Both the position numbers and the translations under genes were made by a program. From the sequence record KY499642.1: 64,000 bases of DNA; one strand, given 5' to 3'. Each line of letters begins with the position of its first letter. Position 1 is the stretch's first letter. Positions 42,490 through 59,426 of the stretch are shown here, in pieces. Below the pieces are notes generated by a model, which was not told where the DNA came from, did not search any database, and was given only the letters and a program-made list of their open reading frames with translations.

Positions 42490-45021
42490 ATGAAAAACTG
42501 GCTTGTTAAACACGCCCACGATAACATCTGGTGTCAACCCGCCAACGACAGGCGTTGGATTGTCAAGCCAGAGCGTCTATCGATGCCGGAGGGCGAAACG
42601 TTTGGCATGCAAGTTCAAGGTTACTCGGTTCGTCTTCCTGAGAAATTGAAGTGGTTCCATGTGTTCCAACTTGGTGGTATGAACCATCGTGAGTTAGGCA
42701 TCACTGACCTCTTCGATTCTTGGGTACGTATGGATCGCATCGTATCGCATTATGGTACGATGGTTACGTTGTATAACGAACTCGGACGAACGCTTCCTTT
42801 GGAATACGTCTGGCTTCGTAAACAACCAAACGGTAACGTTATTCTTGCGGTCGAAATGGTAGAGAGTCAAGTCGACTTCTCAACCGACCCATTATACATC
42901 CGCTTTTATAATGGCGCATTCCGTTATACTGGCGATTACACCGAACAACACCACAGCAAAATCATCGGACGCATTATTCGTGACAACGCTGAGCGTTTTG
43001 ATGCGGTACGTAAGTTTGAAGAACTGCGTGCTATGCCGGGTGAACCTATCGCTTATGTTAACGGTTATGAGATTGACATCTTAACTGCCGATGACATTAA
43101 GTTGTGGGACTACGTTGAAATCGTTTACGACGGTTTGATTGAATCCATTCATTATTTCCCAATGTCTGAGTTGCAGTCTTTCCATAGTGTGGTTGACAAC
43201 AAGCGTAAGTTCTTGTTACACCCACCACGTCAGATGGATACGATTCACTTCATTAACGACATTGACCTGTCGGTACTGAAAGGCAACTTCGGTCTGTATT
43301 ACCACCAGAACCAGTCTGAGTCTTTCCGTCAAGTGACTCACAACGACTACAGTGTGTTGGTAAACCGTTTCAGTCAATACATCATTCAAATGGATGACTG
43401 GAATGACTTGAGTGAATTGAAAGTCAAGATGATTGTTCGTCGCTCTGGCATGGATAGACCGTTGACGTTTAACCACAACCGAATTCATGAACTGTACAAG
43501 ATGACGGACGATCAAATCGTCAGTGCTATGGCAGGTATGAACTCTAACGTTACAGAATGGAAAGCAGCAAACCTTGAGACGGCTTCTTACAACCGTATCA
43601 TGGCAGCGAAGTATTCAACCATCACTAACGAGTTATGTACTGATGCTTACGGATATAATGCCGTTGCACGTTATGCAGCAGACACCCCTACCAAGACACA
43701 TCTGGCAGGCGGTGAGGTAGTAGCGACACTACCACCTTTACTTGCTCGTAACTGTACGGTATACGAGTATGACGCTAACGGCATATTGCTTGGTTACTAC
43801 AACTACCTTAGCAATGTCGATGAAGATTACACGTGTAAGCATGCGGAAACCGCAATGGTGGAAGCCATCGAAGGTCAGGCAACAAAACAGCCGGACATCA
43901 CTTTCGATGCAAAGGACTACGTTTGTCAAGATGGGTTCAACTACCGCTTCTACACCAATCAGTTGAAGAGTGGTGTGCCGACGGACATCTTTGAAGACGT
44001 CACAGGCACAGACGCATACTCCATCGATGTTGATGGAACCGTGATTTGGAATATTGACCAATCGCGACGTATGCCAGTCATCTGGTGCGACCGCAACTTC
44101 CTCAGCTACGGCTTTGAAGAAGACATGTTTGATGGTCATGCTAAGTTCACTATTGATTACTGGGAGGATGACGACAACTACAAGCCTCTATTGCTCGAAC
44201 CTGAGACGTTAGAGATTTGGATGAATGGACATATCCTCGTACCGGGTATTGATTACTTCGTGAAGTGGCCTCAAGTTGTGGTTTGTAACAAGACCTACCT
44301 TGAAGACACGCCGGAACGTCACAAGCCTTGGTTTGATATCCGTTGTCGCGGTCTGGCTGAGAAGCTCCGTATGCCTAAGACAGGCTTCGTGGTGAATAAT
44401 CTTATCAGTAACAATGCGTACTTCGATGTGCGCGATGACAAGGTTGTCCAGATTGCCATTGGTGGTGGTGTTCGACACCGTAGTGATGTTGTCTTCCGTG
44501 AAGACACGGCATTAGGTGTGCCTGAGATGGTCAACGGTATGCCATTCATGGTGAACGACCCAACCGTGCCTCTACGTGAGCTTGTAAGTAAGAACACGTA
44601 TGAGATGCGTGATAGTTCTCGTGATTTGGACGGACGTATTGAAGCGTATCTAACAAACTTCATCCCTACGCCGGAGAACATCGAGCATAACCCAATCCCT
44701 CAAGTGTATGAACTGTTTAGTCCAATCCTGAATAAGGTTATCCATGACATGATCAATGGTGACCTGATGCCGGAAGCGGATGACCAACTGTATTACATCA
44801 GTACACGACAGTTCGACGAGTTGATGAAAGAGTACATGTATCTGCTTGACTATGAGCCAGTGCTGCAAGGCGTTGACTTACGTTACGTATCGGTGCATCC
44901 GCATGACGGGAACGATTACATCGAACTTGAGCCTATCCAGATGACTATGGTTGAACGAATCAACGACCGTTATTTGAACAACAAAGTCATTATCAATAAA
45001 CTGCTTCGTATTAAGGTTTAA
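42490..45021 (+). CDS. Virion structural/baseplate protein (phiKZ gp27-like), 843 aa
   Basis: N-terminal WC.P..D motif, size and synteny. Confidence 0.7.
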   Translation: MKNWLVKHAHDNIWCQPANDRRWIVKPERLSMPEGETFGMQVQGYSVRLPEKLKWFHVFQLGGMNHRELGITDLFDSWVRMDRIVSHYGTMVTLYNELGRTLPLEYVWLRKQPNGNVILAVEMVESQVDFSTDPLYIRFYNGAFRYTGDYTEQHHSKIIGRIIRDNAERFDAVRKFEELRAMPGEPIAYVNGYEIDILTADDIKLWDYVEIVYDGLIESIHYFPMSELQSFHSVVDNKRKFLLHPPRQMDTIHFINDIDLSVLKGNFGLYYHQNQSESFRQVTHNDYSVLVNRFSQYIIQMDDWNDLSELKVKMIVRRSGMDRPLTFNHNRIHELYKMTDDQIVSAMAGMNSNVTEWKAANLETASYNRIMAAKYSTITNELCTDAYGYNAVARYAADTPTKTHLAGGEVVATLPPLLARNCTVYEYDANGILLGYYNYLSNVDEDYTCKHAETAMVEAIEGQATKQPDITFDAKDYVCQDGFNYRFYTNQLKSGVPTDIFEDVTGTDAYSIDVDGTVIWNIDQSRRMPVIWCDRNFLSYGFEEDMFDGHAKFTIDYWEDDDNYKPLLLEPETLEIWMNGHILVPGIDYFVKWPQVVVCNKTYLEDTPERHKPWFDIRCRGLAEKLRMPKTGFVVNNLISNNAYFDVRDDKVVQIAIGGGVRHRSDVVFREDTALGVPEMVNGMPFMVNDPTVPLRELVSKNTYEMRDSSRDLDGRIEAYLTNFIPTPENIEHNPIPQVYELFSPILNKVIHDMINGDLMPEADDQLYYISTRQFDELMKEYMYLLDYEPVLQGVDLRYVSVHPHDGNDYIELEPIQMTMVERINDRYLNNKVIINKLLRIKV

Positions 45022-54661: not shown

Positions 54662-54678
54662 CGTGAGTAGTACCTTTT

Positions 54679-54704
54679 GAGAGTCTTCGGACTCTCTTTT
54701 TTTT
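54679..54704 (+). terminator. Rho-independent terminator
   Basis: gagagtc-ttcg-gactctc then T8. Confidence 0.9.
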
Positions 54705-54712
54705 GTGTCGGC

Positions 54713-54753
54713 AAATAAAACTACAGGCGATGCTAGGAATTAACCTAGCAACC
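54713..54753 (-). terminator. Second minus-strand terminator-like hairpin
   Basis: cagg..gctagg-aattaa-cctagc..cctg preceded on + by aaataaaa. Confidence 0.5.
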
Positions 54754-54781
54754 TGTCGGACATATAATACCCTACTAAGGC

Positions 54782-54819
54782 AAATAAAAAAGGGGGTGTC
54801 GGTAGGTTTCCCTACCGAC
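54782..54819 (-). terminator. Minus-strand terminator
   Basis: gtcggtagg-tttc-cctaccgac stem preceded on + by aaataaaaaa, which gives a U tract on the minus transcript. Confidence 0.75.
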
Positions 54820-55075
54820 GTATGCCAGACAACGAGTAAGCAACAACCTTCGGTGGAAAGTTGGGGTGGGGCAGACTGCTGTTCGGTCAGTCCACTCCTC
54901 CAATCAATCGCCAAGTCTACATCACGTTAGGACCCACGTTGAAACACATCCGGCTAACACAGGAGGTGCCGCCACGTTCACAGTTGGCTAAGTAACCGTA
55001 AGCAGCATTTGCCGGAGGGCGATAGTTGTAAGAAATCTTTGGCTGGTTCGAACAGTTCCTTACAGAAGATACTAC
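54782..55075 (-). ncRNA. Candidate structured non-coding RNA (~290 nt)
   Basis: No credible ORF; nested helices on the minus strand; ends in a minus-strand terminator with no minus-strand CDS upstream. No known family recognised. Confidence 0.4.
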
Positions 55076-55109
55076 AGTCAGTAAAAAATTACCATTTATA
55101 CGGTGACAA

Positions 55110-56160
55110 ATAAAAAGGCGATTTTGTTTTTCCCCCTTTAAGGTCCCCTCTTTCCTTTCCTTTTCTCTTTCCTTTTTCCCCTCTTTGGAAACACCCCTTT
55201 TACCTATCTCTTATCCTATCCTAACTCCCCCCTAAATCCCCCTTTTAGCGTCACTCCAGTCGCTTCGCTCCCAAGGAGTTCCTTGAATGCTGACATTAGA
55301 TTAATGTCTCTATATTTTTTTACTGTACAAAAAGTGAACAGTTTTAAATTGAGTATAAAGTTTAAGAAAAATTTAAGGTTTAATTAATCTAAATATAAAA
55401 AGTATGTTTAATAGAAATAGATCTATTGATCCAAGAGATTGACTTGTTTCTCCGAGAGATTGTATGAGGGCGCGCGCCGCCCGACCCGTATAAGGAGATA
55501 AGTGATGATACTGAAGTTTATATGCATGGATGAGATTAACGCCATCAGGATGGCTAAGAAGCTGCTCAAGCGCGGTAGACGAGTAGCGGTTTACAAACGG
55601 ATGGTGATATCAGAAATCGAAGGAGACGAATACGCGTTATTGCAATGTCAGTTCCGCGCGTACACGGACACGATCAATTCTTGGGATCTAAATTATCTTA
55701 AAGTGAATAACTTAATTTTTTGATCTAGATTAAGTGTTTTTCTTAGGTTAATGTATTTTTCTACGGAAGTATTCCTATTATATGTCTTCACTGGCTTCTG
55801 CTAGTGTGGATCTAAAGATCACAGGGCGGAGCCCTGGATCGCAGGAAGACGGACGGAGACCGACCGGGGGCGAGTAGACACCGGAGGTTGAAGGATTCGA
55901 GGGAGCCCCGAAGGCTCCCAGAGAAGTAGATAGATAAAGATAGATAAAAGAGAATAAAAAAAGAAAACATCCAGGATGGATGGAAAGAACTATGGAGCTT
56001 TAGAAAGTTTTAAACCTTTTTTTATTTGTTGAGACTAAGATATGAAATTAAATAAGATTTTGAAGAGTTTATTGATCGCATTTCCAGTTCTGTGTCCTGT
56101 GCCGCCCGCGCCACTGGTTACTTTTTATACAGAAGTGCATAGTGTACTAAAATAGTAAAA
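55110..56160. other. Large mostly non-coding, origin-like locus
   Basis: C/T tract 55120-55245, AT-rich core 55310-55430, A/G tract 55840-55990, several hairpins and 9 GATC sites. Confidence 0.45.
55502..55723 (+). CDS. Hypothetical protein (73 aa) embedded in the origin-like locus
   Basis: SD taaggag; GTG or ATG start. Confidence 0.55.
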   Translation: MMILKFICMDEINAIRMAKKLLKRGRRVAVYKRMVISEIEGDEYALLQCQFRAYTDTINSWDLNYLKVNNLIF

Positions 56161-56182
56161 TTTCTTTTTAAAAGGCCGTTAG

Positions 56183-57263: not shown

Positions 57264-57725
57264 ATGTCAGTTAGTTTAATTGCTATACTCGCGGCAGAAC
57301 AGCCTGGGTACTATAGCCAGATTATCAGTGACCTCGACACGAATGATCCGCGCACGCAAGCAGTTAAGCGAGCGCTGGCACATTATCATGAAGGGGTTGT
57401 CGCTAAATACGAAGATGTGAACTTCAGCCGCTTTGGCTATATCACTGGTAATCTAGAAATAGATTGGAGTAAGTCGTTTGGTGAGATACCTGCCTGTATG
57501 GTGGCGTTCTATTACGAGGCAGTACGTCGCTGTGTAGCAAATCGTGATAACTTCCAACATGCGGTGATGTTCTTGTTTGATAGACTGGGACATCGCATTA
57601 AGCTGTATCAGGAACATTGTACCGAGCAAGAAATCAATGAATGGATACGTCAAGTCATCCATGATTTGTACATTGAATATGAGCAACGTCCAGAACCCAT
57701 TAATTTAATACATATGGATCTATGA
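57264..57725 (+). CDS. Hypothetical protein (153 aa)
   Basis: SD ggagg. Confidence 0.75.
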   Translation: MSVSLIAILAAEQPGYYSQIISDLDTNDPRTQAVKRALAHYHEGVVAKYEDVNFSRFGYITGNLEIDWSKSFGEIPACMVAFYYEAVRRCVANRDNFQHAVMFLFDRLGHRIKLYQEHCTEQEINEWIRQVIHDLYIEYEQRPEPINLIHMDL

Positions 57726-58610: not shown

Positions 58611-59426
58611 TTACACTTTAACTTTGCCAGCACGGAAGATATGCTTGTTCTTCCGAGCAGGGTCGTTGAGTAGTAAGATAGTGTGCCATTTCTGATCGAG
58701 TAGGTCTTGGTACATCTGATGATGATCACTCCATTGGTCTACAAACTCTTTGTATCGACCAAAGTCACGACCACCCTCTAGACGCGTTCTATCCAATCCT
58801 AACGACAGTTCACGGTACAGGTAAGCCTTACATGCCACATTCACCAATTCCGCAAAGTCTTGGTAGTATGGGCGTTTGATTTCAAGTAAGTCATCCGTGT
58901 AACCAACTCGACACTCTAACGTGATATCAACCGAGAAGTTTTGATAGTCATTGATTTTGACTACGTTATCTCCTAGCAGTTCAACTTCCGCGTTCGTAAT
59001 ATTTGGAATAGGACGATGGGAAGCATTAACTGACTGAATGCTACGTTCGAACGGGGACACAGTGAAAGCCTGTGTGGATTGTCCGGGTACACGTTCAGAG
59101 TAGTTTGACGTAACGTTAAGTGACACGCGGTTAACTTGGACGATTTCTCGACCCAGAGTCATATGACGTGGAATTACATAGATACGGCTGTAGTCTTCCA
59201 GCTTCTCATACGCAAGTCCTGACAACGGGATTTCAAGAGCAACGCCACCAATCGAGTCTAAGTCCGGCTTAATGAGATTCGCAATCAATTCATCACGAAT
59301 TTCACTGTCAACAGACTTACGACGACGACCCCAACGCTGTTCTTTTTTTCTGAATCCGTCTTCTAAAATCTCTTTCGGAATGTCCGAGAATTTGAGACGG
59401 TTCAGAGCATGCTCTATAGCGTTCAT
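58611..59426 (-). CDS. Conserved phiKZ-like protein, probably virion structural (271 aa)
   Basis: SD aaggagg, start MNAIEHAL. Function inferred only. Confidence 0.6.
   Translation of the reverse strand: MNAIEHALNRLKFSDIPKEILEDGFRKKEQRWGRRRKSVDSEIRDELIANLIKPDLDSIGGVALEIPLSGLAYEKLEDYSRIYVIPRHMTLGREIVQVNRVSLNVTSNYSERVPGQSTQAFTVSPFERSIQSVNASHRPIPNITNAEVELLGDNVVKINDYQNFSVDITLECRVGYTDDLLEIKRPYYQDFAELVNVACKAYLYRELSLGLDRTRLEGGRDFGRYKEFVDQWSDHHQMYQDLLDQKWHTILLLNDPARKNKHIFRAGKVKV

Follow-up and report, generated by a model that had tools for sequence, protein, structure and literature searches.

The genome of Vibrio phage pVa-21 (KY499642.1), a phiKZ-like nucleus-forming jumbo phage, contains a 1.5-kb unannotated stretch flanked by the plus-strand genes gp194 and gp195. 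We analyzed a window of 64,000 nucleotides of this record (window coordinates, which are used throughout, are record coordinates minus 124000), in which the unannotated stretch spans positions 54662–56182. A sequence-only reading had proposed that the minus strand encodes a folded non-coding RNA of about 290 nt ending at an intrinsic terminator, that the nearest upstream minus-strand CDS ends at 58611 and that the region is GC-richer than its flanks. The position of the upstream CDS agrees with the gene table of pVa-21, and the G+C content is indeed 0.54 at 54800–54999 versus about 0.43 in the flanking sequence. The convergent gene gp194 ends with a strong plus-strand terminator of its own (54679–54704) which stops plus-strand transcription ahead of the element; the body of the element is therefore placed between convergent terminators, in a minus-strand transcription unit. 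As delimited by the alignment of its homologs, the whole conserved RNA element occupies 54781–55098 (minus strand), beginning with the stop codon left over from a lost gene (55098–55096) and ending in a terminator tail. It is single-copy in pVa-21 and in its sister phage pVp-JHP1101, since searches with BLAST and with a covariance model found no extra copies in either genome.

The sister phage pVp-JHP1101 is the one sequenced close relative and could be aligned at about 88%. Further contigs from public assemblies and metagenomes were reached via homologs of gp194 and of a minus-strand gene of about 380 aa, which is described below. The resulting alignment comprises nine different element sequences, which represent about seven lineages, and the nucleotide identity of their flanks ranges from 97% (L022) down to about 74% (L019). 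No more relatives were found in IMG/VR with gp194, gp195, an alignment of the 380-aa protein and one DNA pattern as queries, nor in the JGI metagenomes or in the GTDB genome contigs. So far the RNA family appears to be restricted to a single lineage of Vibrio phages from marine and aquaculture settings.

The element does not belong to the RNA classes for which we searched. ARAGORN found no tRNA or tmRNA genes in the window, and no Rfam 15 family reached its gathering threshold anywhere in the window, the models for tmRNA, RNase P, SRP, 6S, group I and group II introns, pRNA, ROOL and GOLLD included. When the E value was relaxed to 10 there was nothing on the minus strand of the element and one weak overlap on the plus strand far below threshold, and at six homologous loci nothing was found at E values up to 1. 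The earlier remark that the hallmarks of tRNA, tmRNA, RNase P and SRP RNA are missing is thus borne out.

We therefore turn to the comparison of the homologs, which carries the evidence for a fold, the single-sequence folding energy being unremarkable (z = −1.2 for the minus strand and −0.7 for the plus strand). The consensus fold of the nine sequences comprises 44 pairs, and 96% of the cells are standard pairs; when the partners are slid by 1–3 columns only 34–48% are still paired. Seventeen pairs show double-sided changes as compared with 8.5 ± 2.2 in column shuffles, and none of 500 shuffles reached 17, in a small sample of about seven lineages whose relatedness inflates such shuffle statistics. 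The structural conservation in relatives which the sequence-only reading had wanted to see checked is thus present as compensatory changes across these lineages, and all four complementarities that it had listed correspond to helices with covariation support (C, D, E and B in the nomenclature used below). Read as minus-strand RNA, the helices have 44 G:U cells and 7 A.C cells, and these counts are reversed on the plus strand. This asymmetry places the RNA on the minus strand. As judged from this comparison, 55064–54786 is a compactly folded non-coding RNA domain of about 280 nt encoded on the minus strand, and the core of the original proposal is upheld.

Following the minus strand from its 5′ side, the stop codon is succeeded by a U-rich spacer (55081–55092) of six to nine U and then AC, which is kept in every lineage and may be a candidate processing site. 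Hairpin C (55027–55064) has a stem of 9 bp (55064–55056/55035–55027), in which four pairs have undergone compensatory changes on both sides. The following three-way-junction domain (54907–55023) is closed by helix D (55023–55018/54912–54907). Its first arm consists of helix E (55016–55011/54954–54949), leading into Fo (55007–55001/54973–54967) and then Fi (55000–54994/54985–54979) with a conserved loop, and its second arm I/G (54945–54936/54927–54915) lies within a near-invariant block of 32 nt (54946–54915). MAFFT misaligns helices E and Fo, and we therefore judged these two by independent folds rather than by pair counts: the three-way junction recurs when each homolog is folded alone, despite quite different sequences. 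Re-alignment of the junction domain by the covariance model (11 copies) gave 95% paired cells versus 26–49% with slid partners, and 7 double-changed pairs versus 2.9 in shuffles. The junction strand 54961–54968 carries an anti-Shine-Dalgarno-like motif and is unpaired in the independent folds. In pVa-21 and JHP1101 these 8 nt match what we take to be the usual 3′ tail of 16S rRNA; the CUCCU core is present in seven of the nine homologs, reads UUCCU in L022 and is missing in L019.

Downstream of the junction lies the long irregular hairpin B (54865–54901), with a core stem 54895–54888/54878–54871 and a conserved loop that includes 54885–54879. Several of its pairs change on one or both sides yet stay paired, and its U:G wobbles fit the minus sense only. 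Hairpin H (54844–54863) is variable, having an 8-bp stem in pVa-21 and being represented by different hairpins in other lineages, and in contig X4 the segment 54820–54905 is replaced by 87 other letters. A conserved and mostly unpaired 14-mer (54823–54836) then precedes the proximal terminator directly on its 5′ side.

With the fold at hand, the coding potential can be weighed. The sequence-only reading had seen no credible ORF, and the comparison agrees: neither strand has a conserved frame, start or stop or an excess of third-position changes. The mismatches between pVa-21 and JHP1101 are clustered and distributed 18/22/18 over the three frames, and the indels measure 1, 2, 3 and 7 nt. A small plus-strand protein of 43–69 aa, annotated as pVpJHP1101_208 in the sister phage and corresponding to 54861–54995 of the window, might nevertheless be what is encoded here, as an open frame with a common peptide core is found on this strand in several lineages. 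The common core, however, follows from the invariance of the 32-nt block, which is invariant at third positions as well. Start, stop and frame vary, the pVa-21 version being frameshifted after the core and the L018 version split in two; the variable columns are spread evenly over the codon positions (21/18/22), the ORF start in JHP1101 is not preceded by a ribosome-binding site, and the 44 to 7 ratio of G:U to A.C cells fits a minus-sense RNA. We therefore rejected this ORF on account of its unconserved start, stop and frame and its flat codon-position variation, and regard a protein as an extremely improbable explanation of the conservation.

Two other plus-strand ORFs in the neighborhood deserve mention in their own right. 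An unannotated ORF of 73 aa at 55502–55723 has 72-aa counterparts that are called or annotated in JHP1101, L003, L004 and L022, and probably represents a genuine small gene that the pVa-21 annotation overlooked. At 57264–57725 there is an ORF of 153 aa for which the pVa-21 record has only a shorter CDS of 75 aa (pVa21_197), while the full 153 aa are called in relatives.

The hairpins C and B are also connected with each other. The first seven nucleotides of the C loop (55055–55049) are complementary to 54885–54879 in the B loop over 7 bp, and leaving the very divergent L019 aside this pairing is kept in all eight full-length homologs. A double change from G:C to A:U has occurred in L015 and L018, and a change from A to G, giving G:U, arose independently in L004 and in L022. 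Among trials with shuffled loops, 0.06% attained 7 bp. The covarying complementarity points to either a compact tertiary fold or a pairing between molecules.

Pairing between molecules is known from the pRNA of phage phi29, a phage-encoded non-coding RNA with a three-way junction and two complementary loops whose 4-bp pairing was first deduced from covariation. The pVa-21 element likewise has a three-way junction and two mutually complementary loops, and the C and B loops might accordingly join molecules hand in hand into dimers or rings around the junction. The resemblance is one of architecture only. The pairing comprises 7 bp, the element follows a head-protein-like gene instead of lying at the end of the genome, and it has no match to an Rfam model on its own strand at E values up to 10; moreover, we know of no phiKZ-like phage that needs a packaging RNA. 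We consider oligomers of this kind distinctly unlikely. If they did form, the element would be an oligomeric structural or scaffolding RNA for a nucleus-forming jumbo phage, made late together with the head-protein gene.

The 3′ end of the domain is formed by an intrinsic terminator. Two tandem terminators dedicated to the RNA had been proposed, and both hairpins are present where they had been placed, the proximal one at 54798–54819 and the distal one at 54724–54755. The proximal terminator (54786–54819, minus strand) is found in every lineage. It has a G+C-rich 9-bp stem (54798–54806/54811–54819) with a GAAA loop, which is followed on the transcribed strand by a spacer of 6 nt, six U (54791–54786) and AUUUG; because of the spacer it is overlooked by a simple scanner. 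Eight of the nine pairs vary while remaining paired, six of them on both sides, and two G:U wobbles identified by eye (JHP1101, L012) would read A.C on the plus strand. The distal hairpin is followed by just four U and occurs in some lineages only, so that the two hairpins are not an ancestral pair.

Both the proximal and the distal hairpin have the tail TTTTATTTG. This 9-mer is found 10 times in the window with 0.93 occurrences expected, and 21 times in the whole pVa-21 genome with 3.6 expected, in 18 of the 21 cases directly after a G+C-rich hairpin. From this enrichment and placement it follows that TTTTATTTG is a terminator signature of pVa-21's own, namely a hairpin, a U-run and ATTTG. 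It should be useful as a marker for terminator annotation in this group of phages.

The distal hairpin and the second TTTTATTTG tail are part of a 69-nt insert (54721–54789), which together with its 11-nt direct repeats (54710–54720 and 54779–54789) covers 54710–54789. Four of eight lineage groups carry the insert (pVa-21, L022, the JHP1101 group and L018), and L006, L012/13, L015 and L019 lack it; the distribution is patchy, as the sister lineages L018 and L015 differ in this respect. Between pVa-21 and the JHP1101-like contig L003 the insert is 100% identical. It resembles a small terminator cassette that is mobile or arose by duplication. The plus strand of the insert also contains a partial early-promoter-like box; this box and a sigma-70-like box were considered as promoters and rejected, their scores being under the matrix cut-off.

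The sequence-only reading had taken the RNA for a free-standing gene with terminators of its own. By origin it is not: wherever the sequence of a relative extends far enough, the element starts exactly at the end of a minus-strand gene of 379–381 aa, and it is therefore ancestrally a 3′ UTR. In these relatives a same-strand stop codon precedes the element, and gene and element have the terminator of the mRNA in common; in pVa-21 the gene is gone. The arrangement of gene and element was also found in four further metagenome runs, none of which shares the deletion. pVa-21 alone is without the gene, and a junction of about 45 nt specific to this phage (55099–55143, minus strand) stands in for 1196 nt of its closest relative L022, comprising the gene and its ribosome-binding site. 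The deletion extends from 53 nt ahead of the start codon through the gene and spares the stop codon, which is kept at 55098–55096. Every helix of the RNA is intact in pVa-21 after the removal of the gene.

The protein of about 380 aa is 51–58% identical between lineages whose RNA blocks stay invariant. It has no significant match in Pfam or PHROGs, and a Foldseek comparison of its structural model (mean pLDDT 70) with the PDB gave no match. The model does match predicted phiKZ-like internal head and other virion structural proteins with E values of 4e-11 to 1e-6, all of these matches coming from a viral library of predicted structures. The product of the lost gene is thus predicted to have a phiKZ-type fold like that of virion or internal head proteins. 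A distant paralog, pVa21_241, is kept in pVa-21.

Upstream of the deletion the 5′ leader of the lost gene is conserved (55144–55324, minus strand), and in pVa-21 it is directly fused to the RNA element. It contains a purine-rich tract (about 55260–55130), two small hairpins and a weak promoter-like box. In the minus sense 55129–55480 is 95–100% identical between pVa-21 and the JHP1101-like contig L003, in contrast to 60–90% for the neighboring genes and flanks. We also note that 55129–55480 is the best-conserved part of the locus, that many SD-like motifs are found in the purine tract and that the two small hairpins are perfect. The promoter-like box (55324–55287, minus strand) scores 7.4 with an early-promoter matrix whose consensus we derived from ten pVa-21 sites and for which the 99.99th percentile score is 5.3, but true early promoters score 24–44. 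The early-promoter consensus of pVa-21 reads as an A-rich tract, then a box like CAGATATATATCAT and then AGTGA, and plus-strand matches with scores of 24–44 are located at positions 1829, 10167, 36493, 49508, 52856 and 59515 of the window.

A hypervariable and deletable gene between two highly conserved non-coding flanks is what recombination anchors predict, and the constraint on the locus could accordingly act on the DNA, be it as an anchor for swapping the variable gene, as a replication origin or as a packaging site. Yet the compensatory changes with their strong excess of G:U over A.C indicate selection on a single-stranded minus-sense RNA, and the long-range covariation of the C and B loops has no explanation at the level of DNA. 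A role at the DNA level is therefore in our judgment very unlikely.

In the relatives, then, the domain constitutes the 3′ UTR of a rapidly diverging gene whose predicted product resembles virion or internal head proteins. The fold is complex, better conserved than the upstream coding sequence and intact after the precise loss of the gene, and for these reasons we propose a role beyond the protection of an mRNA 3′ end. We lean, a little beyond even chances, towards the domain being a discrete stable RNA which acts via its invariant loops. In the relatives, cleavage of the mRNA at the conserved U-rich spacer would release it, whereas pVa-21 would produce it fused to the leader, as an RNA of about 500 nt. 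The domain would then accumulate as a discrete stable species and be independent of the upstream protein, with its invariant loops and unpaired strands offering a platform to which a protein or a second RNA would bind. The roles named in the sequence-only reading (RNA sponge, anti-defence RNA, replication primer) are neither favored nor disfavored by these results. The weakness of the upstream promoter-like box speaks against this proposal, and as only pVa-21 has the deletion, which may be recent, the element could have been retained without selection.

The main rival to a discrete RNA is a 3′ UTR that acts purely in cis on the stability, processing or translation of the virion-protein mRNA and that has become a functionless relic in pVa-21 after a recent deletion. 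That the element always adjoins one gene, being directly 3′ of it wherever the gene is found, would fit such a role as well, and the deletion has been seen in pVa-21 only. A possible route would be a pairing of the CUCCU strand with the Shine-Dalgarno site of the upstream gene: the anti-SD-like motif is unpaired in the junction, and the ribosome-binding sites of the gene are strong GGAGG types. A precedent is the icaR mRNA of Staphylococcus aureus, in which an anti-SD motif in the 3′ UTR pairs with the 5′ UTR of the same mRNA. As in icaR, the element exposes a C/U-rich anti-SD-like motif in a 3′ UTR, on a transcript with a purine-rich leader and a strong ribosome-binding site. However, the motif forms part of a far larger conserved fold, the energy of a duplex between leader and element is no better than that of shuffled sequence, and the CUCCU motif does not covary with the ribosome-binding site. 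Besides this, the architecture is much more complex than that of known 3′ stabilizers, conservation is higher in the RNA core than in the coding sequence on which it would act, and the helices have all survived in pVa-21. We consider a purely cis-acting element possible but rather unlikely.

The unpaired 14-mer provides one lead to a possible function. In both pVa-21 and JHP1101 its minus-strand sequence (54836–54823) is the perfect complement of a stretch within the leader of the gene pVa21_051, outside the window, and it has the location typical of sRNA seeds, just 5′ of the terminator. The RNA might thus act in trans as an antisense RNA, the 14-mer pairing with the loop and the 3′ strand of the inner hairpin in the gp051 leader and thereby altering termination or processing. 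A contig with a gp051 of just 62% identity has the target site unaltered, and the site lies inside a structured leader with a compensatory change of its own. On the other hand, a 14-nt match to some part of the genome is also obtained with 36% of shuffled elements, so that the match to the gp051 leader is by itself not significant and the antisense argument is post hoc. Nothing covaries between the 14-mer and its site because both partners are invariant, and in the lineages L015, L018 and L006 the 14-mer is changed. An antisense action on gp051 appears unlikely to us.

The gp051 leader itself (record positions 43990–44135; about 1400–1550 in contig L028) is a conserved non-coding stretch of about 130 nt with a promoter-like box. 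It contains a 14-bp terminator stem around the inner hairpin, with at least one compensatory change between phages, and it is nearly unchanged in the contig with the 62%-identical gp051. This leader is a candidate attenuator or sRNA.

How does the element compare with known RNAs? The enterobacterial 3′ UTR-derived sRNAs of the CpxQ, SroC, DapZ and MicL type are structurally simple RNAs of 50–100 nt which have the mRNA terminator in common, carry a conserved unpaired stretch before it, are cleaved in an A/U-rich spacer and are better conserved than the neighboring coding sequence. The element resembles them in using the terminator of the upstream gene, in the conserved unpaired stretch before this terminator and in being better conserved than the neighboring coding sequence. 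It differs from them by its length of about 280 nt, its three-way junction, its covarying loop–loop contact, its occurrence in a lytic jumbo phage and its processing, which is so far a prediction. ROOL and GOLLD are large phage-associated structured RNAs of 450–1300 nt, often multi-copy, with promoters of their own and of unknown function. With these the element has in common an elaborate fold in a phage genome supported by covariation, but at about 280 nt it is shorter, it is single-copy and adjoins a gene at the 3′ end, and it is similar to them neither in sequence nor at the level of models. Judged by these comparisons the element is best classed as a new RNA family, a structured 3′ UTR-derived RNA that would be unusual in its complexity and in its natural orphaning.

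The literature consulted here says little on the non-coding RNAs of nucleus-forming jumbo phages (PMC13282480; PMC8244752), and differential RNA-seq of phiKZ could not confirm the one sRNA predicted there (PMC8244752). Because the family is limited to one lineage of Vibrio phages and its function is as yet conjectural, the immediate reach of the finding is limited. The non-coding RNAs of nucleus-forming jumbo phages are, however, almost uncharted. A complex fold with a probable tertiary contact, which has outlasted the precise loss of its gene, would offer a target that can be mutated in order to study the roles of RNA in phages which separate transcription from translation, and pVa-21 provides for this purpose a natural construct in which the RNA domain is present without the upstream protein.
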